A stretch of DNA of 21,474 bases from Hyaloraphidium curvatum SAG 235-1. Taxonomy: Eukaryota > Fungi > Monoblepharomycota. Where the stretch lies: positions 1 through 21,474 of the forward strand of contig JAIVFI010000052.1 in the NCBI GenBank assembly GCA_025558095.1, in the 5' to 3' direction. Every line of letters starts with the position of its first letter. The first letter of the stretch is position 1. Below are positions 3,001 to 21,474 of this stretch, in pieces. The notes beneath the pieces are model-generated. The model was not told where the DNA came from. It did not search any database and saw nothing but the letters and a program-made list of their open reading frames with translations. The position numbers and the translations under genes are program-made.

Positions 3001-3380
3001 GACTGCCCGGGCCTGGCGTCCTTAGCGTCCTTGGCATCCCTGTCCCTCGGATCCCGCGCCTCCCTCCCCTCCCTTGGGTCCGGCCTGGGGTCCTTCCCCT
3101 CCCTCGGTTGCGGCCCGGGGCTCCCGCTGCCGTCCCTGTCGCCGCGCCGCCGCCTGCCCGCGGCCTCCATCTCGCGCTTCTGCTCGGCGGCCGACGGGCC
3201 GAACCGGCCGCGCGGCGGGTTTGCGGGCGGCGCCGAGGCGGGGGCCGCCTTGTGCGCTGCGGCTTTGCCCTTCGCGGGCGGCGGCGGCGGCGTGGCGCGC
3301 GCGGGCGGGGGCGTCTTGCGGCCCGTGTCGCCGAAAATGTCCGAGATCACGTTGCCGCCGCCCTTGGCCTTGGGCGGCAT
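1..3380 (-). CDS. Large low-complexity nuclear/chromatin protein with a degenerate bromodomain-like region and an AT-hook; exons 3380-2734, 2674-2161, 2092-<1; 3' end lies outside the window; apparent frameshifts between ~1380 and ~1860
   Basis: ATG at 3380 (MPPKAKGGGNVISDIFG). Intron 2733-2675 (GTGCGT...TTTAG) joins KRR|RTEPPE in frame. Intron 2160-2093 (GTGGGT...CTGAC...CCGCAG) joins AKH|IERNIVPE. Exon 2 has TPLFIPFDPN...PSLQAIENRVEKGGYPDMATFLEEV. From ~1380 to 1 there is one open, Glu-rich frame containing KRRPGRPRK (~1200-1228). This frame is absent from the ORF track because it has no stop in the window. Confidence 0.75.
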
Positions 3381-4277
3381 CTTGAACGACGGGTGGAGGG
3401 AAACCAGGAGCGGACCGTGCGGAACAACAGCGCGTCTCAACACCGGCCCGTGTTTCAATATGGAGGTCCGTCCCGGCCGCCGCCGGAGAGTGGAACTGTT
3501 CAGCTGGCGCTCGTGGCGTCGCACTATGCTGGAATTCGGCCTCGCCAGCCGCTCGACGTGGGACCTCGTGCGGCCCTCGCTGGACACAACCCGGGGATCG
3601 CGCGCGGAAACCGGCCGACGCCGCCGTGAGATTGCTGGCGAGGACCGACGGCAACGCGCCGCGGTTTCGCGTTCCCGTTGTCCGCGGCGGCGGCCCCACC
3701 CTGCGGTCGGACATCCCCTTGGATTCCGCGGCCCTCCAGGCCGTCAAAAGCAGCGACCGTGCTGTCGCCGACGAATGCTCCCATCTAGCTTCTCGAAACA
3801 ATCTCATACCGCTTTCCGCGGGCCATCTTGCACGGCGTGGGGCAGGCGAGGGTGTACATCCCCGTTGCCTCGTGTCGCCCGCCCGGACCCATTGCGCCGG
3901 ACCAAAGATGCCTGCTGACCAAAGACGTTTTCGCGCGACCTCCAAGCGCCCATCTCGTCGTCAGGGATCCCCCGCCCGCACAAGGGGTCGAGGTCGCGGT
4001 TGTCGAGGGCCGAGCGGGCGGAATGCGTAGCAATCTACGTCTTCCGCAGCGAATGCGGGGCGGCCTCGGCCCGCGGCCAGCTTCCCATGCGCAAATCCCG
4101 CCCACAATCGATGCTCGGTGATGCACGCCCGGCGCTTCCGCTGCATGCCAGCAAGGCCGATCGCCGTGTGGACCCCGCGATCGTGCACAGCCGGGGAACC
4201 CAAGCCCCGAACGAACCCCCGAACGAACCCTCGAGGTCGGCCGGGCACTCTCCCGGCCCACCGCTCCCCGCGGCCGA

Positions 4278-4646
4278 ATGGCGCTGCCGCCGGCGTATTT
4301 CGCCGCGCAGCTTTCCGCGCTCGCGGCGGTGTTTTTCTTCGCGACGCGTGCGCCGCGTGCGCTGCTGGCCCTGGTGCTCCTGTCGTCGGCGTTCATCCTG
4401 GCGCGGGCGCCGATGTCGCCTGCGGAGCGCGCCAAGGTCGCGGCCGAGCTGCCGCTGGGGCTGGGCGCGGTGCTTGCTTTCCCGCTGCTGCCGCCGGGGC
4501 CGCGCGCGCGCCTCCTGCCGCGCTTCTCGCGCTTCGTGGACGCGGCCGTGCTGGCCAACGTCGCCGGGCCGGGGGCCGACGCAGCAATGGCGGGGGTTGC
4601 GTGGTGCGTGGCCGGCTATGCGGCCTACCGGACGTGGCGCATGTAG
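4278..4646 (+). CDS. Small hypothetical multi-pass membrane protein (122 aa)
   Basis: ATG-to-TAG ORF with 3-4 hydrophobic segments (LSALAAVFFFA, LLALVLLSSAFIL, LGLGAVLAFPLL, MAGVAWCVAGYAAY). Its composition is unlike the Arg/Pro-rich shadow ORFs. It is divergent from the gene starting at 3380. Confidence 0.55.
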   Translation: MALPPAYFAAQLSALAAVFFFATRAPRALLALVLLSSAFILARAPMSPAERAKVAAELPLGLGAVLAFPLLPPGPRARLLPRFSRFVDAAVLANVAGPGADAAMAGVAWCVAGYAAYRTWRM

Positions 4647-5132
4647 GCGTGGAAAGGTCGATGTTCGAGCCGGGACGGGAACGCACGAAGGCGCGAGGCG
4701 CGTGGAGTCCGTTCTGGTCCGAAGCGTACTCGGCTACTTGGCCTACGGGACGGATGACCAACCGGACGGCCTGCGCGGCATCCTCCATCTCGACGCGTCT
4801 CGCAGGCCGCTCGCAGTTCCGCCCCGACGGGGCGCTGAGCGATCAATCGCGCCCATCCAGCGCCTCAGGCGCGGACTTGTTTTGCTCCGACAGCCAGAGG
4901 ACCTCGCTCGCAACGGGGACACCGCCGGCAAGGCCGGGGACTAGGCGAGCGATCCTATCAGAGGAAGTGATCAAGCCGCCCGCACCAGACCTCTGTTTGC
5001 TAAGGAAGCTATGGTCGTGGCGGCGCCCGAAGCACTTGTTGAGAACTGGGTTGAGATTTGGCGAGCCGCGCACTCGCAGGTCGATTAGCCCCCTCCCGAG
5101 CCCCACCGCCGAGCGCCCGACGCGTTTTCGCA

Positions 5133-6234
5133 ATGGACGCGTCCCGAGATGTGCCTTCCGCGGCGGCGGACGTGCCCCTCGCGGCCCAGGACGCGGGCGA
5201 CGCTTCGCCGGAAGACCCCCCGATCCTCCCCGCGGAGCTGCTCATCCTCGTCTTCCGGCATCTGGAGGCAATGCGCTGCAAAGCGACCCTTTTAAAGTGC
5301 GGCCTCGCGAGCAAGGGGGCGCTCGGGCTCGTCCTTCCTCTGCTCTACAGCCGGATCACGTCCGCGGACGCGCGGCGCCCGTCGTTCCTCGCCGCGGCCC
5401 GGAAGCACGGGCCTGGTGCAGATTCTGGACCTGAGCAGCTCAAGGGTCGGCCTGGCACTGACGGCCGCGTGCCTCGCATTGTTTGTGGACCTGCGCGAGC
5501 TCCGCCTCGCGGTGTGGCACGGCTGGAGCGAATGGGACGGCGAAGGGACCGTTTTCGGGCTCGTCGCGGCCCTCCAGAAGCTGGAGAAGCTGGACGTGCG
5601 AGCTGTCGGGAACGAGGCATCGGAGCTCCGCATTTCCTTGCCGCCGTCGCTGCGGCACGTTTCGTGGTCGGGCACGGTCCCGTCCGACACAGGTCGGCTC
5701 GCAGCTGCGCTGGGTACGGCGAACCTGGAGACCCTGCGGCTCGACATCGGCGGCAACTTCGTGTACGGCCTCTTTGTGCGCCTGGATCCGTTTCCCCGCG
5801 CCGTTTCGGCGATCGATTCGCTGTCGTTGCGCGTCGGCGATCTGGGGCAGGCCGAGCATCTGTTCCGGAACCCCGCCTTTTCGCCCAGCGAGCTGCGGAT
5901 CAGCTTCCACCATCCCGGCCTCTTCGAGCCGCCGCTTATCCCGGGGTCGCTGCGCGGCGTGACCGGGCTGCGAGCGCTGGAGCTCGTGGGCGGGAAGACG
6001 GGCTGGTTGCTCCAGCTCGTGAACGCGCTGCCCCCGGCAAGGCGGCTCGTGCTCCGCGGCTTCGTCCCCACCATGCACAGGATCTCGCTTCCCGCCGCCG
6101 CGGGGATGCTGCAGGACTACGAGGACGTGGCGGTCTCCGAGCTCGACTTGGTGGAAGACGACGAGGATGGGGCGGCGGAAACGGAAATGTGGAGGAGGAT
6201 TACGGGCGGGCGTTACTCCGAGGCCGAGAGGTAA
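5133..6234 (+). CDS. F-box-like/LRR-like family member A, with a frameshift at ~5412 (pseudogene or sequence error)
   Basis: N-terminus ILPAELLILVFRHLEAMRCKATLLKCGLASK is F-box-like. The frame changes at CAC GGG C CTG GTG, where paralog D reads HADLVRIL, and continues VQILDL...LRELRL...LEKLDV...LETLRLD...LRALEL (LxxLxL repeats) to EMWRRITGGRYSEAER*. Confidence 0.75.
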
Positions 6235-6253
6235 ACGGCGTCTTGGAGCTGGT

Positions 6254-6620
6254 GTAAACCGCCTGAGTTGGCGGGCCGAGATCCCGGCGTCCGTGGCGGC
6301 AAGCGGGCACTCTTGGCATCCGGCCCTCTCTCAGCGGTCTTGGAGGTCGGGACACATACTCATGCTCGCAAACGGCTCCCCCGAGCATGTCGTGGACCTG
6401 GGGAACACGCGCCTCCGACAAAGCTGCTCATCACCTCGCACTTTGGCACTACGCCGAACGCGGAACTGCTCCCGGCTCTGGAGGAGATGATGGGGCGGTT
6501 CCCTTTCGAGCAAGTCGAAGTGATTGGATTCAGTGAGGACGTGTGCACAGGTCCAGACGTGGAAGCCGAAAGGGAGCTGTGGAGGAAGATCGCCCGCGGG
6601 CGGTTCTCGGAGTACTGGCA
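6254..6620 (+). pseudogene. Fragment B of the same F-box/LRR-like family (C-terminal pieces only, internal deletion and frameshift)
   Basis: VNRLSWRAEIPASV matches LRHVSWSGTVPSDT and LKHLSWAGGFPADV. ILMLANGSPEHVVDLGN matches LELVGGKTGWLLQLVN. In another frame EAERELWRKIARGRFSE matches the family C-terminal motif. No F-box N-terminus is visible. Confidence 0.6.
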
Positions 6621-7416
6621 AAGTGCGGGTCAAGATACGGAGCTGGACGATTGGTCGAGGGACGTTCGAGAGGCGTTGGACCCCGCGGAAGGACATTGGG
6701 TGGGACGGAGGTTGGCATTTCAAGACCATGGTATCACATTGATAGAACCGTCGACACAGTTGTCTCTCGCCCGGACCAGCGTGCGGTCCTTGGTCCCGCA
6801 TCGGCGACGGCACGTTCGGTCCGCCTTCCCGGCTCCAGCTCCACGGCCCGGCTTTTCCTCGCCCCGCACGGACGGGCCGCAGCTCCCCGCGGCCCTTGTG
6901 CACGGGGCGGGCCTCCCGCCCGGGTCGCACCTCCGACCGGCGGAAGCCCGCCACGCCGCACGTCCGTCCCGGGGTTCCGATCGCACGGCCATGCTGCGCG
7001 GCGGGCCGGGCAAACGGCGGGCTTCGCGCCGGGAGACGCGCGCGGGGGGTGGTGCGGGGGCATGCGAGCCGGCCTCGGCACGATGCGGGGGTCCAAGCAA
7101 GGGGGTTCGTTCGGGTCGGTCCCGGCCCCGGGGGGACGTCGGGTCGACGAGCACGGGGACCGACCGGTCCGCGCGCACCCCAAGGGGGTCCCGCTAACCC
7201 GATCCCTCGACTGCGGTCCGGGCTTTCTCCCCGGAAAGCGGAGGTGCGGAGGGTAGGGATCCGGGATCCCCTTACGGCGGCGGCTTCCCGTCCCTTGGAG
7301 CTCGGTGCGGGAGGGGCTTCCCCGCGGCGAGGCGCCCCGAAACGGCCCCCGCGATCCGGAGATGCCCATCGCTCGTCCGTCCGCCGCTTCGCAGGTCCAG
7401 GCCCCCCCAGTGCGGG

Positions 7417-7716
7417 TCAAATCAGCAGGCTCGGCAGCCCCTCCCCCGGCGTCCCCCCGTCCTCCTCGGGCGGCCACGGCGCCTCCTCCTCCGCGTCCGG
7501 GACCACGGGCGGCTCCCACCCGCGATCGAGCCAGCCGCGTTCGGGGAGGTGCGGCGGGGCGGCGGGAGCCCACGAGTCCGGCGGGGGGTCTGCGTCGGCT
7601 GGGTCGGGCGGGGGCACGGGGAAGGCGGAGGCGGGCGACGCGAGGAGGAGGAGGAGGGGGAGCAGGAGGAGGAGGGCCGGGCGGGGGAGCGGCCGGCGGG
7701 GGCGCGGGGGCGGCAT
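7417..7716 (-). CDS. Small secreted Pro/Trp/acidic peptide 1 (99 aa)
   Basis: MPPPRPRRPLPRPALLLLLPLLLLLASPASA-FPVP is a classic signal peptide (basic n-region, Leu h-region, ASA cleavage site). The mature part contains DSWA, RGW twice and WPPEE. Confidence 0.7.
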   Translation of the reverse strand: MPPPRPRRPLPRPALLLLLPLLLLLASPASAFPVPPPDPADADPPPDSWAPAAPPHLPERGWLDRGWEPPVVPDAEEEAPWPPEEDGGTPGEGLPSLLI

Positions 7717-7988
7717 GGCGGGGGTCGGCCGGTCGGGTGCGGGGCGTGGCGGGCGGGTGCCGCGTCTCCCCGGCGCTGCGGGCGCGATGCGGGTGCGGCG
7801 TGCGGCGGGACGGCACCGGGACTTGCCGGCAGACGTCCGGGGCCGTTGCCACACCGTGTCGGTCCCCCGTCAGCAGGCAGGCTGCGCGCGGTGAGTCGGC
7901 GCCGACCGCGCATCGCCGACCTCGACCGCACACACCAAACACCGCCGCACGCCTGCCCCCGCGCCGCCGCCCGCCGCCGCCCGCCGCA

Positions 7989-8279
7989 ATGATCCTCCGA
8001 AGCACAGGTGCGCACCGCCGGGGCCCGCACGCCGCCGCCGCTCACCCCCCGCCCGCCCGCCAAGCCCCCCTGCTGCTCGCCGCGCTGCTCCTCCTCGCCC
8101 TGCTCCCCCCCGCCCTCCCGGCACCGTTCCCGCGGCTCCCCACCGACGAGCCCTCGTGGGCGCAGCTGCTCCCCTCCGCTGACGGCGGCTGGGCCGCCGG
8201 CCTCCCCGCGCAGCACCCGCCCCCCGCGGACACGGACGCCGACGACGGCGGCCCCGAGGTGTGGCCGCCGGACGAGTAG
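7989..8279 (+). CDS. Small secreted Pro/Trp/acidic peptide 2 (96 aa unspliced; 77 aa if the in-frame intron 8008-8064 is removed)
   Basis: Hydrophobic LLLAALLLLALLPPALP-AP. A putative 57-bp intron (GTGCGC...CTCAC...CAAG) gives a canonical signal peptide, MILRSTAPLLLAALLLL. The mature part contains PSWA, GGW and WPPDE*. AATAAA lies downstream at 8458-8463. Confidence 0.65.
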   Translation: MILRSTGAHRRGPHAAAAHPPPARQAPLLLAALLLLALLPPALPAPFPRLPTDEPSWAQLLPSADGGWAAGLPAQHPPPADTDADDGGPEVWPPDE

Positions 8280-8453
8280 CCCCCCGCCGCCGCCTCCCCC
8301 CACCCTCCTCCGCACGACCCGCGCGGCCCGCGCCCCGGCCGACGCCGCCGCACGCGCGGGAGGCACCCCCTCCACTGCTCTGGGCGGCCCCCGCACGCCC
8401 GCCCCCACCTACGACGCACCCCCGCGCACAATATCGCACGAAACCCCATCTAC

Positions 8454-8463
8454 TGTAAATAAA
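8454..8463 (+). promoter_or_regulatory. Candidate polyadenylation signal (TGTAAATAAA) for peptide gene 2
   Basis: Overlapping TGTAA and AATAAA in a short AT-rich patch ~180 bp downstream of the TAG at 8279, within otherwise very GC-rich sequence. Confidence 0.4.
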
Positions 8464-9232
8464 CGATGGTTACACCCGTTCTACATCCGATTCGGTCGCG
8501 CCGATCCGGCTTCCGTCCGGATGCGGAGCCGCAGGGTCCGCCCGGCCGGCCGCCGCAGGGCCCCGCAGGCCGGTTTCCGCCCCGCGAGAACCCATCGCCG
8601 GCCGGCCGGCCGGTCCCCGCCGATCCGCATCCGCCTTCCGCTCCGACGGCGTCCCCGGCATCGATGCCCGCACGATGGGGCGCTGCTGTGGCAACCTTCC
8701 TCAACCCCCGGGCGGTGCCGACAAAGGGTCCGCAGATCCCCTATCCCCATCCCCATGTCCTTTGGCGGTGCCGGCCGGCTTGGCGGTGTCGTCCGCGCCC
8801 TTTGGCGGTGCCGTCGATGGTGAGGGGGAGGGGCGGACGGGAGCGGCGCGTGCTGGGTTGGGTTGGGTCCGGGTTCGGGCGCTGCGGAGCGGCAGCACAG
8901 CGTGCCGGCCGGGGTGGGACGCGGCCGCCGGCGGCTTCCCCCTCTTTGCGATGCATCCGTCCGCTGCGCGGCCCGTCCCGCCCGCGAACCCCCCCAAAGT
9001 GTGCTCGCGGCGGGGCGAACGGCGTCCCCGGGCGGGAGGTCTGCCGAGAAGGGCGACCGCGGGCTTCCGGAGAGTTCCGGGCCGTCCGCGGCCGGGCGAA
9101 GAAAATAGACCGCTGGTTGTATCAAGGGGCCCAATGCCGTCGCTATATCCACGATGTTGCCACCGGAATCCCGCACGCCGAACTGGCGCCATTCATCCCT
9201 CAGCGAAGCGACGCTACGGCGGCGACGCTCCC

Positions 9233-9960
9233 TCATTGCTCCTCCGAACGTCTCCCGCCCGTGATCCTCCTCCACATTTCCCCATTCTCGTCACCGTTCA
9301 CGAAAGCGGGTTCGGAAACGACCGCGTTCTCGTGGTTCTGCAGCAGATTATCCAAAGCACGCTGGTGCCTTCGGAGGTGGGAGTGAAGTCCCGGAGCACG
9401 AGTTGCCTTGCCGGCGGGAGCGCGTCCCCAAGGTCGAGCAGCCAGGGCTTCCGCCCGCTCACAAGCTCCAGCACGTCCTCTGGGTCGGCGAAGCCCACGC
9501 CATCGAAGGAGATTCGCAGCCTGCGAGGAGTGAAGCCGGGGTTTCCGAACAGATCTTCGGCGTGCTCCAGATCGGCAACGTGCAACGATATCATATCGAT
9601 CACGGAGACTACGTGGGCGAGCGGTTTGAGGTGCATGAAGAAGCTGTCGATACCGTCGCCATCGAAGTCGAACTCCAGGGTTTCCAGGTTCGCAGCCCCG
9701 AGCGCGTTCGCGAATGCATGTTCGGTTGTCCGGCGGCGCCTCCGACCACAAGAGGTGCTTCAGTGATGGCGGTAGGAGAACCTGGAGAAGAGGTTGGCCA
9801 AATGCCGGGGCGCGCACGTGCACGTGGAGCTTCTCGAGCTTCGGGATGGCCGCAATGAGCCCGAAAACGGCCCCTTCGTCTTCCCAGTTGGACGGCATCG
9901 CGAAGCGCAGCTCCCGCAGGTTCCCAAAGGGCGCAACAAATGCTGCTCGTAAGTCCTATT
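9233..9960 (-). pseudogene. F-box/LRR-like family member C, 5'-truncated, with at least two frameshifts
   Basis: PFGNLRELRFAMPSNWEDEGAVFGLIAAIPKLEKLHV aligns with member A (LRELRLAVWHGWSEWDGEGTVFGLVAALQKLEKLDV). The frame shifts at ~9730 into ALGAANLETLEFD...LEHAEDLFGNPGFTPRRLRISF...LPPARQLVLRDFTPT. It shifts again at ~9360 into EMWRRITGGRRSEEQ*. There is an upstream in-frame TAG at ~9956. Confidence 0.75.
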
Positions 9961-10058
9961 TCATGCAGGCGCCAGCCATGGACGTGCAGCCTTTCGCCTG
10001 CACGTCATTGCGCCCATTTGATTTGCTCAGCTCCTTGCCCCGCCCGTCCTGACGTCCC

Positions 10059-10550
10059 TCACTGTCCGGCCTCCCCCTTCTCCATCAGCGCGCCCCACCT
10101 CTCAAAGCTTTCGGCGCTCCACACCTCCCCCACGTCGTAGAACTCCGCCACGGCCCTCGCCCCCGCGGGCAGCACCACCCACGGCTGCTTCGTCGACGTG
10201 TAGATGTGCACGTCGGGCCGCACGGCGTCGGGGTCCTCGAGCGTGCCCGCGCGCACGAAGGCGCAGAGCCTCCCGGCCTGCGGGTAGTGCGACCACAGCG
10301 CGACGCGGCACGAGGGGCAGCGCGCGACGAGCTGCCCGCGGCCGCTGGCCGAGGGCGTGTCGACCTCCTCGGGCGCGCCCGCGAGGAGCTCCACGGCGTC
10401 GGTCTCGACGACGCAGTTTAGGGCGAAGGAGACGCCGGATTTGCGCTGGCAGTGGCAGCAGTGGACGATCAGGGGGGGGCGGGTGACTCGGTACCGCACC
10501 CGCCCGCAGGTGCAGCGGCCGGCGAGGGGGGGTTGGGAAGAGACGGGCAT
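10059..10550 (-). CDS. GFA / CENP-V (Mss4-like) zinc-binding family protein, intronless (163 aa)
   Basis: GRCTCGRVRY, HCCHCQRKSG, RCPSCRVALW, FVRAGTLEDP and PDVHIYTSTKQPWV are hallmark GFA-family motifs. Confidence 0.9.
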   Translation of the reverse strand: MPVSSQPPLAGRCTCGRVRYRVTRPPLIVHCCHCQRKSGVSFALNCVVETDAVELLAGAPEEVDTPSASGRGQLVARCPSCRVALWSHYPQAGRLCAFVRAGTLEDPDAVRPDVHIYTSTKQPWVVLPAGARAVAEFYDVGEVWSAESFERWGALMEKGEAGQ

Positions 10551-10646
10551 GGTGGGGGGTTACACGTAGGCAACGGGTGCTCGAGAGCCCTTTGGTGTGG
10601 AGCGTGTGGCTCGGTTTTTGGAGGTGACTCGTCGCCGGGCTCCGTT

Positions 10647-10920
10647 TTAGAAAGCCCCTTGTCTCCCATCTCTCCCAGCTTTCCCCTCCATGGCCATGAA
10701 GATGTGCAGGACCTGCTGCAGTTTCATCGCTCGTTCTCTATCGATCAGTCTGGGCACGTCTCCGGATTCATTCATTACGAAGACGCGTCGGCCCTTCGGC
10801 GGCGGGGTATCGGAGGAAGGGAAGGAGTATGAATTCACCGTGACGGATGTCTCCAAAAGAACAAAATCTCGGCTACGTATAGGTGCTCAAGAAGCAATCA
10901 GGAAACCCGGGCCACCAAGG
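10647..10920 (-). pseudogene. Possible START/SRPBCC-like domain remnant
   Basis: After an in-frame TGA the frame reads APIRSRDFVLLETSVTVNSYSFPSSDTPPPKGRRVFVMNESG, resembling the START motif P-x-x-x-RDFV...S...PP-x-KG. The resemblance is by eye only. Confidence 0.3.
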
Positions 10921-11104
10921 GGAAAGGAATAAGGCACAAAAGATCGCCAGGTGGTTCGCGGGCTGCTATGGACCGTTCGCAGCAGGGCGAAGGCCGCTGG
11001 TTGATATTGATGGAGGGCCAACACATTGCTACATGATACTGACGAACCGTCCCCGCACGACAATCCTAGCCGTCCGGCTCCCCACCACCATTGGTGGACT
11101 CCCA

Positions 11105-12269
11105 TCAGTCCGCCGAGGCCGCCGCTACAACGGCGAGAGACCTCCCTTCCTCGTATAGCGGCCCGCCCGTGATCCTCCTCCACATGTTCGTTTCGGCCTC
11201 TGCCCCTGCGGTGAACGAGGAACCGAGATTGGGCACGACACCCGCCCATACTTGCTTGCCAGCACCTGCTCCACGCCTGGAAGCGACTCCGGATCCAAGG
11301 ACGGGTAGAAGATCGAGAGCACGAGCCGCTTTGCAGGGGGGGGGCAGGGGCCCCAGCTCGACGAGGCAGGCCGTCTCGCCCATGCGGAGCTCGAGCACCT
11401 CCAGCCCGCGCAGGCGGCCGAGGGACGGTGGGACGGGCTCCTCGTAGCGAAACGTCAGGCTTATCAACAGCCTGCGGGGGGCGAAGGCGGGGTTCTCGAA
11501 CAGCGCTTGGGCTCCAAAGAGCTCCAAGACGGCCAGCGAGAGCGAATCGATGGCCGAGACAACATGCTGCATCTGGGCCAGGCGCACATACAGACCGTCG
11601 GGCGCGCCATCCTGGGTGAGGTCCAGTGCCAGCGACTCCAGCTCGGCGGCCCCGAGCGCGGCCAGGAGCCGGGGTACGTCTGCGGGAAACCCGCCGGCCC
11701 ACGAAAGGTGCTTCAGCGACGGCGGCAAAGCTTCGGCGAGGAAATCCCGATCAAAGTTCCACTCCCCGCCGACGTCCAGCTTCAGTCTCTCGAGCCCGGT
11801 GAGGCCGGCGATGAGCCGCCCGACGGTCCCGTCCTCGTTGGCCCGGTACAGGTTGAGAGCCACCTCACGCAGGTCCTTGAAGAGCCGCAAGCATTCCACG
11901 ATCAGCGCGGTGTCCGTCTCCTCGAAGTGCGGAGGACCGAGGTCCAGGATCCGCACCAGGTCGGCGTGCCGCCGGGCGGCGTCGAGAAAGGACTCGGCGT
12001 GCGCGTCCGCGTGCGTTATCCGCCCGTAGAGGACGGGGAGCGCGAGGTCGAAGGTCGCTTTGCTCGCGAGCGCGCACTCCAAAAGGGGAACTCAAACTTC
12101 GCCTGCGCCTGCGGCCGGTCGCTTTGCAGTCCACCGAGGCCAGTTCGCCGAAGATGAGAGACAGCTCAGGGGGAAAGTTGGGACCGCCGTCCGGCGGCGC
12201 GTCGTCCGCGTCCTGTGCGCGGGCTGGGGCGTCCGCCGGCAGGGAAAGCGCGTTTCCGAGCGTCTCCAT
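11105..12269 (-). pseudogene. F-box/LRR-like family member D, full length but broken by a 31-bp insertion (12086-12116) and compensating frameshifts at ~11340 and ~11230
   Basis: METLGNALSLPADAPARAQDADDAPPDGGPNFPPELSLIF...CKAT [31 bp] LLECALASK is co-linear with member A. A G9 run at 11336-11344 shifts the frame away from the family-like LPPAKRLVLSIFYPSLDPESLPGVEQVL. The gene ends in TNMWRRITGGPLYEE. Confidence 0.75.
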
Positions 12270-12478
12270 CGCGGTGGCTGCGAGTTCGACGGGTGACGGC
12301 GAGGTTTCGGTGGGCGTCTCGACATCCAGTGAACGCAGTAGAAGCGGGTTCGCGGAGCGGCCAACGCGATCCCATGGAACCATGCCAGCTACCCACGATA
12401 CATGCATGAATGAAAACCCCTGCTGCTTTTGAGATCAGTCCATCGCCTCGGCTGTGCCCGCCTCTGCCATCCCCGAGC

Positions 12479-13335
12479 TTACTCATCCTCAGAGTATTCG
12501 CCGCCAGTGATCCTCCTCCACATCTCCTTCTCGGCTTCCGCCTCCCCGGCGGGACGACCGGGCGAGGAACGGCGCTGATCGTAGACGGCAACGCTGCCGT
12601 AGTCCCGCCGCAGCATCGCCTCAACGGCCGCGAGCGATCCCGTCTCCAGCGACGGGGAGAACTCCAAGAGCTCGAGCTGCCCTGCCAGGGGGAACTCCAG
12701 AGCTCCCGCTGTGGCCTTGGTTTGTTCCACAGCCCTTCGACCCGGATACTGGATCCTTGCGGCCGCTGTTCGATGATTGAGGCCAGCATGGGCAAGTAGT
12801 AGGATTCACCATGGATACCTTCCAAGCCATCGCGAAGGACCGATTTCCGCAGGATCACCAGCTCCGAGTGGCAGTTCAGAAGGATGGGGAGAACATCGTC
12901 GAAGAGGGTGTGTGGGGACATCTGGGGCTCGTGGAAGCAAACAATCGGCAGCACTACCAGCGCCCTGAGCAACGGCTCTGCTCCGTGTCCGGTAAGGAAG
13001 GTCATGACATCCGCCCTCTCGACGTTGGCGAATCACGGCGACCTGTCCTCCAGAGCCCGCGCCAGTTTCTGAAAAATGTAGCGCTCGTGCAGAAAGAGGT
13101 GTTTGATCGGGGACCGCGACCACGGAACGGTCATTTGGAGCAGCTGCTGGATGTAGCCCTCGTTCGTCCTCGTGGCGTGGAGCTCGCGTAGAAGCAGCGG
13201 CCGCGCCAGAGCGACGCACTCGCGGGACGCCAGGGCGAAGTGGAGGAGCGTGCATCGGTGCTTTCGGTCCGCCAGAACTTCCATGGCCGCGAGCATCAGC
13301 TCGGGCAGAAGGGCGGGGGCTTCGGGTGCGGCCAT
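12479..13335 (-). pseudogene. F-box/LRR-like family member E (divergent), with in-frame TGA at 13033-13035 and a frameshift at ~12720
   Basis: MAAPEAPALLPELMLAAMEVLADRKHRCTLLHFALASRECVALARPLLLREL is F-box-like and matches the TLLxxxLAS of members A and D. The frame continues past the TGA. The C-terminal piece reads LELLEFSPSLETGSLAAVEAMLRRDYG...EKEMWRRITGGEYSEDE*. Confidence 0.7.
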
Positions 13336-13562
13336 TTTGGCTTTCGGCAATGAGCCAGAGCCGCCTCCCTCCGAAGCTTCAAAGGACGGGAAGCACCGAA
13401 GAACGGGGCAGTTCGTCTCGATCTTCTTGTTATCGCACTTCTCCAGCAACTTCGTCGGATATTCCATTCGTTTCGTATGACATGGACGCCAACGGATTGT
13501 AGAGTTCGAACGAAGACATAGGAAGGCCTACACAATAGAAAACCTTCCAAAGCGAACACACG

Positions 13563-16500
13563 TTACGCCGCCGATAGTCGAGCCAGCTCCCTGGCAACGT
13601 CGGCCATGGCCGGCCTGCGCGCCGGCTCCTCCTCCCAGCACGATCCGACGAGCGCCCAGACGCCGTCGGGCACCCCGCCAGGGCGGGGCGGCCTCTTCCC
13701 GCCGAAGATGGCCTTCATGACCTGGCAACAACGTGTTCCCTCAGTCAGACGGCGGGCAAACATGGAACAGTCGGTGAATACGCACCGCAGCGGGTGAGGT
13801 CAGGTCATCGTACGGGTCCCGCCCGCCAGAGAGGACCTGATAACACATCATCCCGAACGTCCACACGTCCGCCTACCTGCCCATGGGCTCGTGATCGAAG
13901 AACTCTGGGGGCGCGAAGCGGATCGTTGCGCCCTGCAGGCCCTTGTACACGTAGCCACCGTTGCCTTTGCTGTCCTCTATCCGGGTGCGGATCTTGGAGA
14001 TGCCAAAGTCGGCGATCTTGGCCACGGGGTTGCCCGAGCCGTCCACGGCGACGAGCACGTTGTCGGCCTTGAGGTCCGAGTACACGACCCCGCGGGAATG
14101 CAGGACGGCCATCCCCGCCGCGGCGTGGGCGAGCATGCGAATCGAGAGGGGCTTGGGCCAGCCTCGGGCGGCCAGGAAGGACTTGAGGCTGCCTCCATTG
14201 CATAGCTCTGTGACCAAGAAGGTGGGGCCGGTGCGGTACGCAAGCAGAGGCACAACTGGATGCGGGTCAGTCGAGAGCAAGTCTCGCATGGTTGCGTGGA
14301 CCCACGATTGTCGTGCCTGGGCACATCAATCCACATCTTGAGCTCGGCTTCGAACATGACCTTGGCGTCCGCCTCCTCGAGCGACGCATGCAGCAGCTTG
14401 ACCGCGACCTCGGCCCCGCGGAACCGCCCGCGGAACACCTCCCCGAACCCGCCCGCGCCCAGCGGCCGGTCCCTGAAGATCTGCACGTCGGCTTCCTCCG
14501 CCCACACGGCCTTGGTCACCGCGGGCTGCGCCGCGGCGCGCTTCAGCGCCATCGCGACGGATGCCATCGTGGGGCGGGCGCCGGGGTCCTCGGCCCAGCA
14601 CGAGGTCACGACGTCCCACACGGCGTTCGGGACACCTTCCGGCCGCGGCGGGCGCTCGCCCTTGAAGATCGCCCTCATGACCTGCGGCAGCAACGGTGCG
14701 TCACGGCGGCGCACAGGGGGCTCTTCGGGAAAAGGACACTCACGGCGGATGCCGAGCTGAGCTTGTCGTACGGATCCTTGCCTTGCGACAGGGCCTGGTA
14801 GCACATCATCCCGAACGTCCACACGTCCGACGCCCTGCGCGGCGGCTCGTCCTCGAAGAACTCCGGCGGCGCGTACCGCATCGTGGCCCCGCCCACGCCG
14901 TGGTACACGTACCCCGGCCCGCGGCTGTCGCCGACCCGCGTGCGCACCTTGGCCAGGCCGAAATCGGCGATCTTGGCCACGGGCATGCGGCCGCCGTCGT
15001 CGACCAGGACGTTGTCGGCCTTGAGATCTGAGTGGATGACTCCCTTGGAGTGGAGGAAGGTGACGCCGACGGCGGCCTCGGCGAGGAGGTGGATCGTCAG
15101 GGAGGGGTCCCAGTTCTTGCGGGCAAGGAACCTCTTCATGCTGCCCGCCGGGTACAGCTTGGTGATGAGGAGCGTCGGGCCGGTGCGGTATCCGAGGAGC
15201 GGGACGACGTTCTCGTGCGCAGGCAGATCAGCCCACGCCTTGACTTCCGCGTCCAGCATCGCGTTCGCCTCGTCCGTGCTGTACGTGTCCAGGGCCACCT
15301 TGACGGCGACGTCCGTGAGGCCGAGGTACCTGCCGCGGTAGACGGCACCGAAAGCGCCCCTGCCGAGCAGCTCGGACCGCTCGTACGCAATGTCGGCCTC
15401 GTCCACCCAGTACGACGTCTTGGAGCGCGCCGGAGCGGGCTTGGCATCGCCGCCCCCGACGACCACCGTCGCGTCGGAGGCGGAGGATTGCCCCCTCGAG
15501 AGCGGCCTCGGCGGCGGCGCGGGCGCGGCGAGCTTGCCCCTCTGGGCGGCATCGAACTCCTCGAAGATCTTCTCGGCGGCCTGCCACGCATCGTAGCGCT
15601 TGGGCGGCCGCGCGGCCTCGATCGCGCGCACGATGCCGTGGTGCTTCTCCTTGCGGGCGACGTCGAGCCCCGTCTGGCCCTGCGCGAGCGCAGCCGCGTC
15701 CGTGCGCTTGTCAGCAAGGAGCAGCTTGACGACTTCGAGGTGGCCCTGGTGGCATGCAGCGTGGAACGCCGTGAGCCCGTCGCCGAAGGAGGCGTTCACG
15801 TCCAGCTTGGCGTTTCCGAGCATGAGCGCGACCGCCGCGGCGCGTCCCTCGAGGCAGAGCATGTGGAAGCCGGTCAAGTTCTTGGTGTTCCTTGCGTTGA
15901 TGTCCACCCGCGGATCCGCGACGAGGAGTCGGATGACCGCCTCGTGCCCTTTGCGGCACGCAAAGTGGATCCCCGTCCAGCCGTCCTCGTCCTTGGCGTT
16001 CACGTCCAGCCCGTCCCGCTTTAGCAGGAACTTGACCACGTCGGCGTCGCCCTCGCCGCATGCGTGGCGGAAGACCCCGGCAGCGAGCTCGTCCGAGAGG
16101 ACAGGCGGCCCAGGAGCGGACTCCGGGTAGTCCATCTCCCCTCCCCCGACGCCCATGAGCGCCCGCACCCAGGCATCGCGCATGTCCATCCAGCCTTCCA
16201 CCTGGCTGGAGCTGCGGATGTGCTGCTCGACCGCGAGCAGGCACGTGGCCGCATGTGCGACGGTGCAGGTCGGCCCTTTCATCTCCTTGGCCCAGTGCTC
16301 GCGGCGGCCGCCGAGCCAGGACGACCTCTGGGCTTCGGCTTTGATCGCTCGCTCGTACTTGTAGAGCAGGTTGTAGAAGCTCGCCAGGTCCGTAACATCC
16401 TCGGGCCTGGCCAGGGGCACGTGCTCCGTCACGTACTCGGGCCGGAGGCTGCCGTGCAATCCACGCAGAGACGTCCACAGGACAGCCGGGTCGCCCTGCT

Positions 16501-17416
16501 TTGGTTCGGGGTCCGCGCACAGGACCAGGTCGTAGCTGCCTTCGGCGCCCCAGCGGTAGGTGTTGCTGGATCCGTTGTCCCATCGCACGGTGAGAACGCC
16601 GCCCGCCTTGTCGGCATCCTTCACTTTCCCGGCGCCCCCGCCGTCCTGTGATCCCCACTTCCAATCGGGGCCTCGGCGCACGCGCATGCCGACCATCTGC
16701 TCGCAAGTTGGACGGAGCGCCCTTACCACAAGATCCCAGCAGCCCTCCGCCCCCCAGCGATAGTTGTTGGTCTTCCCGACGTCCCATCGGACGGTGACCC
16801 ATCCCTTTTCCTTTTCCAGCACGCCGATTACGGCGCCCTCGCGGCCGGCACCCCCGTCCTGCTCGCCCCACTTCCAGTCCTTGCCGCGGCGCACGCGGAC
16901 GCCCACCATGCCCTCCCACCGCATGCCCCTGGGCCCGTGGCTGCGCACGACCTCGAGGTCGCAGCGGCCGCCAGCGTCCCAGCGGTAGACATTGCTCCGG
17001 CCCGCGTCCCAGCGCACGTGCACCCAACCTTCATACCCCGCATCGTAGTCCAGGGCGACCACCGTGCCTTCGCGGCCGGTGCCGCCGTCCTGGTCGTCCC
17101 ACTTCCAATCCCTGCCGCGGCGCACGCGCGTGCCCACGGCGTGCTCCCAGGGCGTGCCGCTGGCGGCCCCGGGCGGCGCTTCTTCGAGGTCGAACGCGCC
17201 ATCGGCGCCCCACCGGTGCAGGAAGGCGCCGCCGGCGTCCCACTCGACGCGCAGCCAGCCGTCCAGGGGCGCGTGCGCCGCGGCGACGGTGCCCAGGCGG
17301 CCCGCGCCGCCGTCCTGCTCGCCCCACCGCCAGTCGCGCCCGCGCCGCACGCGCCGCCCGATCATCGCGGCGATCGGCGGGCGCGGGGCGTCCCGCGCGG
17401 GCATCGCAGGCGGCAT
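13563..17416 (-). CDS. MIB/HERC2 x4 - helical W-motif repeat - ankyrin repeats - tandem TKL-type protein kinase (~1225 codons); exons 17416-14744, 14681-14306, 14255-13786, 13721-13563; in-frame TAG at 13873-13875
   Basis: Four copies of GxRVRRGxDWxWxxQDGG..G.V...VxWDxG....YRW..G..DL (~17365-16520). About 5 ankyrin repeats (GWTGIHFACRKGHEAVIRLL, GLTAFHAACHQGHLEVVKLLL). Kinase 1 has GRGAFG, VAVK, HSDLKADN, DFG and APPE. Kinase 2 has GAGGFG, VAVK, YSDLKADN, DFG and APPE. Introns 14743-14682, 14305-14256 and 13785-13722 are GT-AG and restore the frame. Confidence 0.88.
16520..17365 (-). repeat. Four tandem MIB/HERC2 domain-coding repeats (~220 bp period)
   Basis: Repeat units start at MIGRRVRRG, AVGTRVRRG, MVGVRVRRG and MVGMRVRRG. 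The + strand repeatedly shows ccacttcca and gccgcggcgcacgcg. Confidence 0.9.
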
Positions 17417-17455
17417 CGCGGTGCGCCGGCTGCCGGTGGGGGACCGCTGCGGTTG

Positions 17456-17471
17456 GACTGACTGACTGACT
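17456..17471. repeat. (GACT)4 microsatellite 40-55 bp upstream of the kinase gene ATG
   Basis: gactgactgactgact read directly from the sequence. Confidence 0.7.
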
Positions 17472-17872
17472 TTCGACGGCTGATGGGTGTTGGGGGACGG
17501 ACCCGGCCACGGGGGACTAACCGTTCCTGGCAGGCGAGACCTCCAGCATTCTCTTGGATTCGATTCGAAAGGACACTGATCAACTGGCAATGCGATTCCT
17601 GAGACAGATGACGTCGTCGTGTTTGCCGTCCGGCTCCGTTCGGGGGGGCGGGGCGGAGTTTCGGAGCGGTTTCCCCCGAATGCCACTCCTGGCAGAGCTT
17701 CACTTCCCCGATTCCATGACAACCAATTCCCATCAACTGGCCAGCATCCGATTGGCCCGATGTCAACGTCTGGCCGGTGACCTTGGCGTGAGCGCGCTGC
17801 CCTCCCCCTGTGCGCGCGGACCCCCGCAGACACTGCCACAAACTCCGGATCCCGTGACCCCAACAGACGCCC

Positions 17873-18373
17873 ATGGCCCCCGCCGCCGAGCGGCGCGCCC
17901 CCGCCGGCGATCCACGACCCCCTCCCGCCGTCGGCCGCGGGGCGCCGACCCCGCCGCCGGCCCCGCCGGCCCCGCAGAAGGCCCCGCCGCGCGCGGACCC
18001 CGCTGACGGCTCCGACTCGGACGGCACACTCGGCGCGGACGAACCCTCGCCCGCCGACTGCACGGCGCCGAAATTCACCCCGCGGCGGTGGGCCTCCCCG
18101 CCCAAGGCCCCCGCCTTCCGCACGCCGGTCCCCGACCGGATAGCGAAGCGCGACGCCGCCTCGGCCGCGCTGGTGGCCGCGCTGCTGCGCACGGGGGCCC
18201 GGGACGAGGACTGTGAGCTTGCAGAGGAAGACATCGAGGAGGTACCGCGCGTGCCGGCGGGGTGCGCTCGTTATTGGGAGTCCGGATTGTGCGACGACGA
18301 CCTGAGGGAGGGGGCAGAGCATTGGGAGGAGCGGTGCGCTGGCGACGCTTGGAGGACCGGGGCGTGCATTTGA
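17873..18373 (+). CDS. Hypothetical protein (166 aa), Pro-rich N-terminus and acidic Cys/Trp-containing C-terminus; divergent from the kinase gene
   Basis: ATG in a gcccATGG context. Non-random C-terminus (AALVAALLRTG...EEDIEEVPRVPAGCARYWESGLCDDDL). It shows the same C-rich-5'/G-rich-3' skew as the confident genes and is followed by more AT-rich sequence. Confidence 0.55.
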   Translation: MAPAAERRAPAGDPRPPPAVGRGAPTPPPAPPAPQKAPPRADPADGSDSDGTLGADEPSPADCTAPKFTPRRWASPPKAPAFRTPVPDRIAKRDAASAALVAALLRTGARDEDCELAEEDIEEVPRVPAGCARYWESGLCDDDLREGAEHWEERCAGDAWRTGACI

Positions 18374-19066
18374 AGGGGTTGTGTCAGGTTGTTTGGGGTC
18401 CGGGGTGCGGGGATGGGCTTGCTTGAATGGAGCACGGCATGGTCGGCTGCGCGCAGAGGGAGTGTGTTTGTTTCTGGGCGCTTCTCTGCGTCCGCAATGT
18501 TTGGAAGCGTTGGTTTTTGGTGAAGCCGGTCGAGTTCCGCGCGACGGTCGATGAACAGACTTGTAACATAAGCACCTGTCAAATGGACGAGCACGTGGAC
18601 ACACGCAGATGACAGGCGCCGGGAAGCTCCATCACGCGGAACACTTTGCTTTTTACCTGCTTGTTGCATCGAGGAGGATCTTGTCGTCCGGCGCTTGTCA
18701 ACGCGCTGTGGAACGCCCCTACGAAGGACCGAAGCTCTTGTCCGGGAACGCAGTTCCATGACAGGCGCCGGAAAACACTATCTCGCCTGACCTTCTCTTT
18801 CTTTGCTTCTTGATCCCTCGAGAACAATCGTTTCTTCCGGCGCCTGTCAAACGGCTACTATGGCCCGAGTCAGCTCCTCCGGGCCATTCATCGCCCAAGG
18901 AGCTCGACAGCACCGGAGGTTGGAATCAGTTGTATAATCTTCATTGTTTTCCTCCAGTTAGGCGAGCGATTGACCGCAGATCGCCTCCCTTGCCCTTCGT
19001 GCTTCGGGCTGCTTGGCGGCGCCGATCCAGCGGGTCCCGGCTAAACCCAACTGTCCCCCGAAAGCA

Positions 19067-20885
19067 ATGGCCGCGGCCTCCAAGCTCGCCGTCGCGGCGG
19101 CGGCGACCGCCGGCGGGCTCCTCCTCTCGCTCGCCGCGGCGTACCGCGTGCTCCGCGCGGGCGCGTACTCGCCGTGGTCGCACGTCCTGCTCGGCACCCC
19201 CGCGCCGGAAAAGGCCTCGAAGCGCCTGCAGTCGGCCGCCAAGCCCGACGGCACCGTCGCCGTCGACATCGAGACGGAATTCTACAGCGTGACGGGCACC
19301 GTGGATGCCGCCTACACGGACGTGGTCGACGTGTTCTGCCGCAACGTCGCCGAGGGCCACGAGGTCGGAGCGTCGTTCTGCGTCTACGTTGGCGAGCGCC
19401 GCGTGGTGGATCTCGCGGGCGGGCAGAAGGTTGGCGGGCGCAAGTACGACCTGGACAGCTGTAGGTCGACCGACGGCCGATCGCGGTCCACTTTCTGATT
19501 GGGCCTCCCCCGCTACCGACCCTGATCCCCTGGTTGAACCGCGGTCCCGCCGGCCCACAGGCAACCAGGTGTTTAGCTCCGGCAAGGCCATCATGTCCGT
19601 CATCGTGGCCTACTGCGTCGGAAAGGGCTACCTCTCCTACGACGACCTGGTCACGAAGTACTGGCCCGAATTCGGCCAGGGCGGCAAGGAGCATGTGACT
19701 GTCAAGGAGATCCTGCAGCACCGCGCCGGCGTGGGCTGGCTCGACCCCGAGAACCGGCTCACGTACGAGGAGTGCTGGGACCTGGACGCCATCCGGCCCA
19801 AGCTGGAGCGGCAGAAGCACAACTTTGACGGCGTCAAGACCCAGAGCTAGTCAGTCCCTTCGGGGCCTTTTCGCTCCGCCGTTCTCACACGCGGCCGCAA
19901 CGTTACGTTACAGCCACGCCGTCACCCGCGGCTACTACATGAATGAGATCCTCCGCCGCGTGCACCCGCAGGGCTACACCGCGCGCGACATCATGTCCAA
20001 GGAGATCCTCCCCCTCCTCGTCGCCGACGCCGACCGCACCGGCCACCCCGTGCACATCTCCGTGCCCGAGGACCCCGCGGTTTTTGGTCACATCTGGGAC
20101 CTGGTCGCCTACCCCATCCCCCGCGTCGTGCTGCGCCTCTTCTACCCGCGGTTCGCCAACCCCGACCCCCTGCCGGAGCAGATCGTCCGCGGCATCCGCA
20201 ACCCCAACCCCATCGCCAACAAGTCCATGGCCGAGACCATGCCCACGTTCGCCGGCCCCGACCCCGTCACGGGCAAGCCGGTGGGCAAGGGGCTGGACTC
20301 GCAGAACTCATGGAACGTGCGGCGCGGGCAGCACACGAGCTTCGCGGTGGTCACCAACGCGCGGGCCATGGCGAGGCTGGGGGCGCTGATCGCCAACGGG
20401 GGCAAGCTGGAGGGGAGGGAGGTGATCCCCGCGGGGACGGTCGGGGTGGCGATGGAGGAGGACCCGTGGAGCGGGGAGGACAGGGTGCTGCGGTTCGAGG
20501 TGCCCTTCACGGTAGGGTCGCGCGCGGGCCTTCTCTTGATGAACGCGGCCTGACGTCGGGATCAGAACGGCGGTTGGGGGATCACCAAGGGCCGCCGCGT
20601 GCCCCAGACGCCCTCGGAGCAGCGCTGGATCGACCAGGGCACGGGCTGGAAATGGGTCGGCTGGGCGGGGTACGGCGGGTCGATGATGCAGTGGGAGCCG
20701 GAGAAGAAGATCGCGTTCGGATAGTGAGTGCTCGGCGCCGCGTTGGGATTTCGGGGACGGAAGCTGATTCGGACGACAGCGCGCCGTCGGCTTTGCAGAT
20801 CTCGCTGCTCGGGGACTTCAGGTCGGCGAGGCTGCTCGAGACCGCGCTGGACTGCTGGGAGGCGGCGGGAGGCAAGGCCGCGTGA
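19067..20885 (+). CDS. Serine beta-lactamase/transpeptidase-fold hydrolase (class C/esterase family VIII-like) with an N-terminal membrane anchor; exons 19067-19460, 19561-19849, 19914-20511, 20566-20723, 20780-20885
   Basis: EVGASFCVYVGERRVVDLAGG, the SxxK motif FSSGK, YWPEFGQGGKEHVTVKEILQHRAG, YHAVTRG, TNARAMARL and GWAGYGGS...IAFGY. Four GT-AG introns (19461-19560, 19850-19913, 20512-20565, 20724-20779) join these in frame. Confidence 0.9.
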
Positions 20886-21091
20886 AGATTCCCGATCGGA
20901 ATCGAGCTTCGGGCACAGCTGTGTGAAGCACCTGGAATGACAAAGCTGGACGTCCAATGCGTTTTTCGGTGTACATACGCTACGTTACCGCCGCTAAGAT
21001 CCAATTCGCAAAAGATGAGCAAGATTCCGTACGTCCAAATCTCAAAGCGTGCAGTCCGAAAGAGAACGAACCCCACGGGTTGCCACGTCCA

Positions 21092-21474
21092 TCAGCGGTT
21101 GACTTGGAGGTTCCCGTTACCCGTAGCGGAGTTGTAGCTGTTTGACCCCGCATGCCTGCACGAGACGGACCTCCGGCCCAAGGAATCCCACGAAGGATAC
21201 CTGTACCGGTAGTTGGCCACCCCCTGCCAGTTTGTGTTTGCCCGCCCGACCTCGCGCCCGTTGACCGAGAAGATGATCTGGATGTTGTTCGCGCCGCCGC
21301 CGTTGTCGGTGCGCGTGGCCCCGCAGGTCAGCGTGACCTGCTGGCCCCTCTTGACTGTGCGGTAGGTCACGGAGATGCGGAGGTTGACCTTGCGGGAGCA
21401 TCCACTGCGGGACGGCAGGCCCAGCTCCCCTCCTTGGCGGCGAGGTGCCACCCTGGCGGACTTGTAGTTGGTGC
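21092..21474 (-). CDS. 3' end of a gene encoding a bacterial-type Ig-like beta-sandwich domain; 5' part outside the window
   Basis: TVKRGQQVTLTC...GANNIQIIFSVNGREVGRANTNWQGVANYRY...SVSCRHAGSNSYNSATGNGNLQV* fits the Big-type Ig pattern (G..VTL...V.F..G..VG...T...G.A). The frame stays open to the window edge, where TNYKSA resembles the end of a preceding repeat. Confidence 0.6.
   Translation of the reverse strand, partial: TNYKSARVAPRRQGGELGLPSRSGCSRKVNLRISVTYRTVKRGQQVTLTCGATRTDNGGGANNIQIIFSVNGREVGRANTNWQGVANYRYRYPSWDSLGRRSVSCRHAGSNSYNSATGNGNLQVNR

Follow-up and report, generated by a model that had tools for sequence, protein, structure and literature searches.

The window analyzed here is the whole of contig 52 (JAIVFI010000052.1; 21,474 nt) of the assembly of the fungus Hyaloraphidium curvatum SAG 235-1; the window has a GC content of 62-79%. 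On its minus strand, at positions 13563..17416, lies a gene whose predicted product combines four consecutive MIB/HERC2 domains, a helical module without a family name, a block of ankyrin repeats (ANK), and two protein kinase domains (K1 and K2). It is a rare domain combination made from known parts, and it has been annotated only generically in public databases. The coding model starts with the ATG at 17416-17414 and ends with the TAA at 13565-13563, giving 1143 codons up to an in-frame TAG and 1225 codons when this TAG is read through. These coordinates and the general anatomy agree with a first-pass annotation that had been made from the sequence letters, with the in-frame TAG as the exception.

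Domain content and gene model

The front half of the protein is encoded by exon 1, in which the MIB_HERC2 family (PF06701) is recognized at 3.2e-66 in four copies, by Pfam as well as by a six-frame search of the genome. Domain 1 occupies 17183..17359 (62.1 bits), domain 2 16946..17134 (68.3 bits), domain 3 16724..16903 (69 bits), and domain 4 16520..16690 (63.7 bits), all on the minus strand like the other features of the gene. Among solved structures, the array is best matched by the MZM module of MIB1 (4xi6, 1.8e-20), and the MIB domain of HECTD1 also matches. The N-box peptide of Notch ligands is bound by Mind bomb through this MZM module (PMC11887331). Recognition of short peptides is the role of the MIB/HERC2 domain type in Mind bomb. 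The ankyrin block follows at 15641..16066 (exon 1 residues 451-592) and consists of about 4-5 repeats that are matched by Ank_2, Ank_4, and Ank. Four MIB/HERC2 domains and ankyrins had been read from the letters, and both are found by Pfam; the description of the front as Mind-bomb-like also fits, as the MIB/HERC2 domains precede the ankyrins and their best solved match is the MIB1 MZM.

Between these two parts lies the helical module (16097..16504). It comprises 136 aa with five predicted helices and an internal two-fold LL..E..I...Q...W...R..W motif, and it is confined to this gene and its paralog. Its AF2 model likewise shows five helices at a moderate pLDDT of 65. Pfam was silent on the module even at E<=10, the Atlas feature search gave no usable match, and Foldseek against the PDB returned nothing at E<=0.001. 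The best VIA-align matches (Z 7.0) were generic helical bundles and fell under the tool's meaningful level for helical folds. A likeness of the LL..E..I...W...R..W motif to WHIM/WSD motifs could not be supported and was dropped. The helical repeat of the first-pass annotation thus exists as a helical element, but as a single 136-aa module with an internal two-fold motif and not as a long array. No signal peptide and no membrane-spanning hydrophobic segment were found in the protein (Kyte-Doolittle [KD] value never above 1.23), so it is not a surface receptor, in disagreement with the term receptor if the cell surface was meant.

K1 begins in exon 1, which carries it from the N-lobe to subdomain IX (14744..15385) with GRGAFG at 15347-15364, VAVK at 15296-15310, HSDLKADN at 15011-15034, and DFG at 14957-14965. 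Intron 1 (14682..14743; 62 nt, GTGAGT..CCGCAG) lies within the K1 C-lobe. Exon 2 (14306..14681) then contains the end of K1 (about 14550-14681), a linker of ~20 aa, and the N-lobe of K2 with GAGGFG (14442-14459) and VAVK (14394-14408). After intron 2 (14256..14305; 50 nt, GTGGGT..ATCCAG, phase 1), the core of K2 is encoded by exon 3 (13786..14255), where YSDLKADN (14059-14082), DFG (14002-14010), and APPEF (13900-13914) are found. Intron 3 (13722..13785; 64 nt, GTGCGT..TGCCAG) has the same position in K2 as intron 1 has in K1, and exon 4 (13563..13721) supplies the K2 subdomains X-XI (profile positions 213-258) and the TAA. All three modelled introns, as read from the sequence, are short and of the GT..AG type.

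Database and family searches were run exon by exon and not on the joined spliced protein. Pfam recognizes most of a PK_Tyr_Ser-Thr kinase in exon 1, and the exons downstream of it are collinear with this profile, which matches the end of K1 and then K2 at profile positions ~5-52, 72-177, 185-210, and 213-258. At the DNA level, the conserved elements can be read in both kinases, namely Gly-loop, VAVK Lys, alpha-C Glu, DFG, an APE-like motif, and subdomain IX. In K1, all motifs are readable from exons 1 and 2 (Gly-loop, VAIK Lys, alpha-C Glu, catalytic Asp/Asn, DFG, APE, and subdomain IX Asp). The residue preceding the catalytic Asp is not Arg in either HSDLKADN (K1) or YSDLKADN (K2), so both domains are non-RD kinases, which confirms the earlier reading of the two loops. 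A Tyr in place of the catalytic-loop His occurs only in this K2 (YSD vs HSD in all paralogs) and is a second private C-to-T change besides the CAG-to-TAG change discussed below. For both kinases, PF07714 gives a better score than PF00069, and the best matches among solved structures are receptor tyrosine kinases, B-Raf, IRAK4, and SYMRK; together with the DLKxxN loop, this indicates a tyrosine kinase-like (TKL-like) Ser/Thr type. Since a single exon (exon 2) physically joins the end of K1 to the N-lobe of K2, separate transcripts for the two kinases would require an internal promoter. The first-pass annotation had seen two complete kinases in one spliced reading frame: the two collinear kinases are there, but K2 is interrupted by the in-frame TAG.

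A protein 100% identical to this gene product is present at NCBI as a 979-aa "kinase-like domain-containing protein", in a single gene that spans K1 and the truncated K2. The NCBI model shares introns 1 and 2 and the split codon with ours and ends at the TAG, whereas its start is the internal Met at 16924. This start is probably too short because the frame of the paralog opens with the same MPP... directly ahead of its first MIB domain. Mismatch-free RNA-like contigs also extend to 17116, within domain 2 and upstream of the NCBI start. In the flanks of the gene (1-13500 and 17500-21474), ten long open reading frames (ORFs) were searched, and no Pfam family was found in them at E<=0.001.

Paralogs, family history and rarity of the architecture

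The window is a copy of contig 1, positions 533609-555078. Over the 16.4 kb compared, there were 0 mismatches and about 12 small indels, and the gene region is identical at 4001 of 4001 positions. As the window duplicates contig 1, the two copies of the TAG are not independent evidence. The locus of another kinase tandem on contig 10 is likewise duplicated on contig 51, and redundancy of the assembly seems a better account of such small contigs than divergence between haplotypes.

Elsewhere in the 31.9-Mb genome, the six-frame search found PF06701 in one place only, on contig 1 near 356.4-357.0 kb. This MIB paralog (contig 1, 352001-362000; minus strand, about 1024-5075 within that segment) carries three MIB domains, two helical modules, ANK, the linker seen in the window gene, K1, and a K2 that is intact. 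An intron at HEN|VVPLL, absent from the window K1, interrupts the K1 of the paralog, and an additional kinase gene lies immediately downstream of the paralog (73-805 of the same segment). The K1-K2 tandem is also found at two loci without MIB or ANK, one on contig 10 (the one duplicated on a small contig) and the other on contig 25. On contig 25 (148001-158000, plus strand, about 6840-10000 within that segment), K1-K2 is followed by a third, divergent kinase with the loop HGNLKCSN, in which Asn replaces the catalytic Asp. This locus may encode a kinase-kinase-pseudokinase protein with no recognizable N-terminal domain. Upstream of the MIB-less tandems, no Pfam domain was found in the long ORFs tried, and the next genes encode an isocitrate dehydrogenase and a P450. 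For the domain mapping on the compared loci, exon translations were juxtaposed, and the TAG and the split codon were each written as X.

The four K2 copies group together (98/96) in a maximum-likelihood tree built on the core exon, in which the position of the K1 copies among paralogs with a single kinase is not resolved. Because the K2 copies group together, the intragenic duplication that gave rise to K1 and K2 is older than the four loci. Close annotated paralogs of the kinase have other N-terminal parts, namely Sel1 repeats (P0123, P0124, and P0127), leucine-rich repeats (LRR; P0126), or nothing further (P0121 and P0122). Paralogs with swapped N-terminal modules had been expected and were thus found, carrying Sel1, LRR, or none. 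The genome contains >130 matches to this type of kinase, and the close paralogs that were read are all non-RD with the loop H[SCG]D. As it is common to all of them, the non-RD loop is a trait of this large family and no mark of the present gene. The nearest relatives of the kinases are the Hyaloraphidium paralogs (45-81% identity), followed by proteins of other fungi at <=35%; plant matches reach 25-31%.

The full domain combination was not found elsewhere. In an exhaustive HMMER search against 1.84 billion representatives, no other protein with MIB, ANK, and kinase together was found among the top matches. The window protein itself ranked first, and the second match was a 504-aa ANK-kinase model (P0200), 69% identical to exon 1, which may be a partial model of the MIB paralog. 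The rest of the best 150 matches showed mainly ankyrin, MIB, or kinase alone, as judged by the best matched stretch, so that a weaker combination is possible among them. A Pfam scan of seven candidates from these 150 gave two proteins with ANK and kinase (P0225 and P0305) and none with MIB and kinase. Among MIB proteins of comparable length, only three others have a kinase (P0026, P0022, and P0081), none of which has ankyrins or a second kinase. By protein-language-model features, the closest Atlas clusters are the ANK-kinase families ILK1, TNNI3K, and RIPK4 (scores 0.94-0.98). In the literature searched, no description of this architecture and no study of the Hyaloraphidium kinome was found. 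The impression that the architecture was not a recognized one therefore holds for the databases searched.

Transcription, constraint and the in-frame TAG

Evidence for transcription comes from a sequencing run (X1) that the tool guessed to be RNA, in which 64% of the gene's sampled words are present. A mismatch-free X1 contig of 461 nt joins position 14255 to 14306 and thereby leaves out intron 2 to the nucleotide (50 nt; CT..AC on the plus strand), which shows that spliced RNA of the gene exists. Another contig runs unbroken from 14946 to 16892 and covers most of MIB domain 3, MIB domain 4, the helical module, the ankyrins, and K1 to DFG. Contiguous mismatch-free contigs together cover 14946-17116. 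The gene is thus genuine and transcribed at least in part. K1 and K2 are collinear in the DNA, with K2 cut by the TAG, and none of the mapped X1 contigs spans K1 and K2 on one transcript.

Selection was estimated pairwise against the MIB paralog by the Nei-Gojobori method, with dS between 0.55 and 0.98. The ratio of nonsynonymous to synonymous divergence (dN/dS, omega) was 0.36 for MIB, 0.42 for the helical module, 0.46 for ANK, and 0.34 for the linker. Lower values were obtained for the pieces of K1 (0.10-0.17), the K2 core as a whole exon (0.11), and the C-terminal exon of K2 (0.20). The front thus diverges 3-4 times faster than the kinases, under net purifying selection throughout. Selection on the MIB/HERC2 and ANK surfaces had been proposed as a check on an immune role; omega is <0.5 in every domain, which is purifying on average.

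The in-frame TAG (13873..13875) lies in K2 between the APE motif and subdomain IX (...EFFDHEPMGR*ADVWTFGMMCY) and closes the open frame at residue 1143 of the 1225-codon model. At this site, the three remaining genomic K2 copies have Gln in the context PMGRQ[AS]DVW, with CAG as the codon in the MIB paralog. Because all three agree, the TAG appears to be a derived Gln-to-stop change. Two ways around the stop were considered and rejected. An alternative donor overlapping the TAG (AG|GTAGGC), spliced to the intron 3 acceptor, would shift the frame, reach a stop two codons on, and lose the conserved subdomain IX. A reading of TAG as a sense codon is contradicted by both MIB genes, which terminate at the same TAA, and by the public annotation, which treats TAG as a stop. 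Furthermore, where other kinase matches contain in-frame stops, which is seldom, TAA and TGA occur as well as TAG, which also counts against TAG as sense.

The 81 codons past the TAG have an omega of 0.15 against the paralog. As this shows no relaxed constraint, the stop is either very recent or not real. The TAG could be absent from the living gene, either because the assembly is wrong there or because it is carried by only one of two alleles, in which case both kinases would be complete and the product would be a 1225-aa tandem like the paralog. Consistent with this, no damage is seen in the 81 codons, in intron 3, or in the TAA, omega after the TAG (0.15) is close to that before it (0.11), and this K2 sits on a short terminal branch (0.032). 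Indels are the only differences between the window and contig 1, so that they represent one assembly rather than independent copies. However, both copies in the assembly contain the TAG, and the public gene model terminates there. It is moreover a substitution, whereas the assembly differences seen are indels, and the same K2 bears the private His-to-Tyr change in its catalytic loop. We regard an unreal TAG as a possible explanation, yet a rather unlikely one.

Alternatively, the whole window copy could be a degenerating duplicate, and the working MIB-ANK-kinase gene would then be the contig 1 paralog (near 353-357 kb). The premature stop precedes the last exon junction by 87 nt, which is a position able to trigger mRNA decay, and 13300-13887 is without any RNA-like contig. 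Against decay, there is a single disabling change across 3.7 kb of coding sequence, neither K1 nor the front is damaged and both are under constraint, and mismatch-free RNA-like contigs cover much of the gene with intron 2 spliced. Holes in the contig coverage, by the tool's own caveat, prove nothing. Decay of this copy is thus considered unlikely.

Proposed function and comparison with known systems

With moderate confidence in the reading as a whole, we favor a soluble, scaffolded signaling kinase from a lineage-specific, domain-shuffling family, whose K2 is truncated in this copy. The protein would be a cytosolic multidomain kinase. Its front (the four MIB/HERC2 beta-barrels, the helical module, and about five ankyrins) may serve as a platform that recruits a peptide-bearing partner. 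K1, a TKL-like non-RD Ser/Thr kinase with full motifs, would be the output and might phosphorylate the recruited partner or itself. K2 stems from the older intragenic duplication common to the four loci and is predicted to be catalytically complete in the other three. Here, the CAG-to-TAG change would strip K2 of its C-lobe, so that the probable product stops at residue 1143 and its second kinase is crippled. The gene is part of a Hyaloraphidium-specific expansion of non-RD kinases in which N-terminal modules (MIB and ANK, Sel1, LRR, or none) are exchanged.

Several points weigh against this reading. With only two MIB-type genes in the genome, the partner and the pathway cannot be guessed. The mapped X1 contigs leave introns 1 and 3, the TAG, and, at the 5' end, the stretch 17122-17562 that includes MIB domain 1 uncovered. 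The low omega past the TAG is equally compatible with a very recent and a spurious stop, and both TAG-bearing genomic copies belong to the same assembly, which leaves room for an assembly error or a single allele.

To our knowledge, MIB/HERC2 domains are known almost solely as substrate-recognition parts of ubiquitin ligases. In the present gene they are coupled to a kinase, in a fungus with no other MIB/HERC2-containing gene apart from the paralog, which suggests that the module can be reused as a general targeting device. Moreover, one kinase type, single or in tandem, is paired in this family with varied interaction modules, a design principle of plant tandem kinase proteins (TKPs) and of innate-immune receptors of animals and plants. 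If any member of the family does sense non-self, the same logic would extend to early-diverging fungi.

Plant TKPs, such as Rpg1, WTK1/Yr15, and WTK2-4, have two kinase domains on a soluble polypeptide with non-RD loops, as is predicted for the window protein. In both cases the tandem arose by duplication, and members bear extra, differing domains. TKPs have been described from plants, and those that are functionally validated are cytoplasmic, each with a non-RD kinase domain (PMC8761531). By analogy, the gene could encode an intracellular immune or non-self sensor, in which a foreign peptide is recognized by the MIB/HERC2-ANK part and defense is then triggered by the two non-RD kinases in tandem. 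The joining of the kinase module to different repeat or sensor modules in the paralogs speaks for such a role. The same is true for the differing module numbers of the two MIB genes (four vs three MIB, one vs two helical), for the faster evolution of the front, and for a nonsense change in one copy as in birth-and-death families. On the other hand, MIB-type genes number only two, omega gives no sign of positive selection at the domain level, and the non-RD loop is family-wide rather than specific to immune kinases. The window kinases belong to a Hyaloraphidium-specific TKL-like expansion, an unrelated lineage that appears to fall outside the plant RLK/Pelle clades of TKPs (LRR_8B, WAK, and RLCK). 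They keep all catalytic motifs and thus do not have the kinase-pseudokinase layout of a decoy. We know of no link between this kinase lineage and immunity, nor of a pathogen system for H. curvatum. An immune function of this gene is therefore doubtful. In its wider form, the idea would be that the fungus has its own equivalent of the tandem-kinase and integrated-domain immune receptors of plants, a cytosolic non-RD kinase family exchanging its fronts (MIB/HERC2-ANK, LRR, and Sel1) to sense foreign or danger peptides, with the MIB array as the sensor and K1-K2 as a self-contained trigger. This is put forward as a speculative and improbable analogy.

In Mind bomb (MIB1/MIB2), MIB/HERC2 domains are also N-terminal to an ankyrin block, and up to 57% of exon 1 is collinear with a MIB2-like protein (P0039). 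Unlike Mind bomb, the window gene has four consecutive MIB/HERC2 domains, the helical module in the position of the Mib-repeat, and two kinases as its C-terminal half. It lacks ZZ (PF00569, E<=0.01, exon 1), Mib-repeat/SH3_15 (PF18346), and, in any exon, RING. The first-pass annotation had proposed that the RING output of a Mind bomb protein was swapped for a tandem kinase. As ZZ and Mib-repeat are missing and no further MIB/HERC2 gene is present in the genome as a candidate parent, this derivation is unsupported.

The ANK-TKL kinases (ILK/ILK1, TNNI3K, and RIPK4/ANKK1) are similar by architecture and features, as they also join ankyrins to a TKL-type kinase. As in the ILK/TNNI3K type, the ankyrins of the window gene are N-terminal to a TKL-like kinase, whereas the kinase of RIPK4 is N-terminal to its repeats. 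None of these families has MIB/HERC2 domains or a second kinase.

The coupling of MIB/HERC2 and a kinase on one chain is shared with three proteins. In P0026 (982 aa; Logan contig SRR23287150_22990, 3001-5949), a non-RD (HLD) TKL-like kinase is C-terminal to three MIB/HERC2 domains. This protein differs from the window protein in having two ZZ fingers, one kinase, and no ankyrins, and it is encoded on an intron-less contig. Its gene lies beside ankyrin and MLKL_N-ankyrin genes, on a contig whose appearance suggests a giant virus or a protist with a compact genome. In P0022 and P0081, a bacterial-type kinase is N-terminal, the MIB domains are C-terminal, and a membrane segment is present. The MIB/HERC2-kinase fusions of P0026, P0022, and P0081 look independent.

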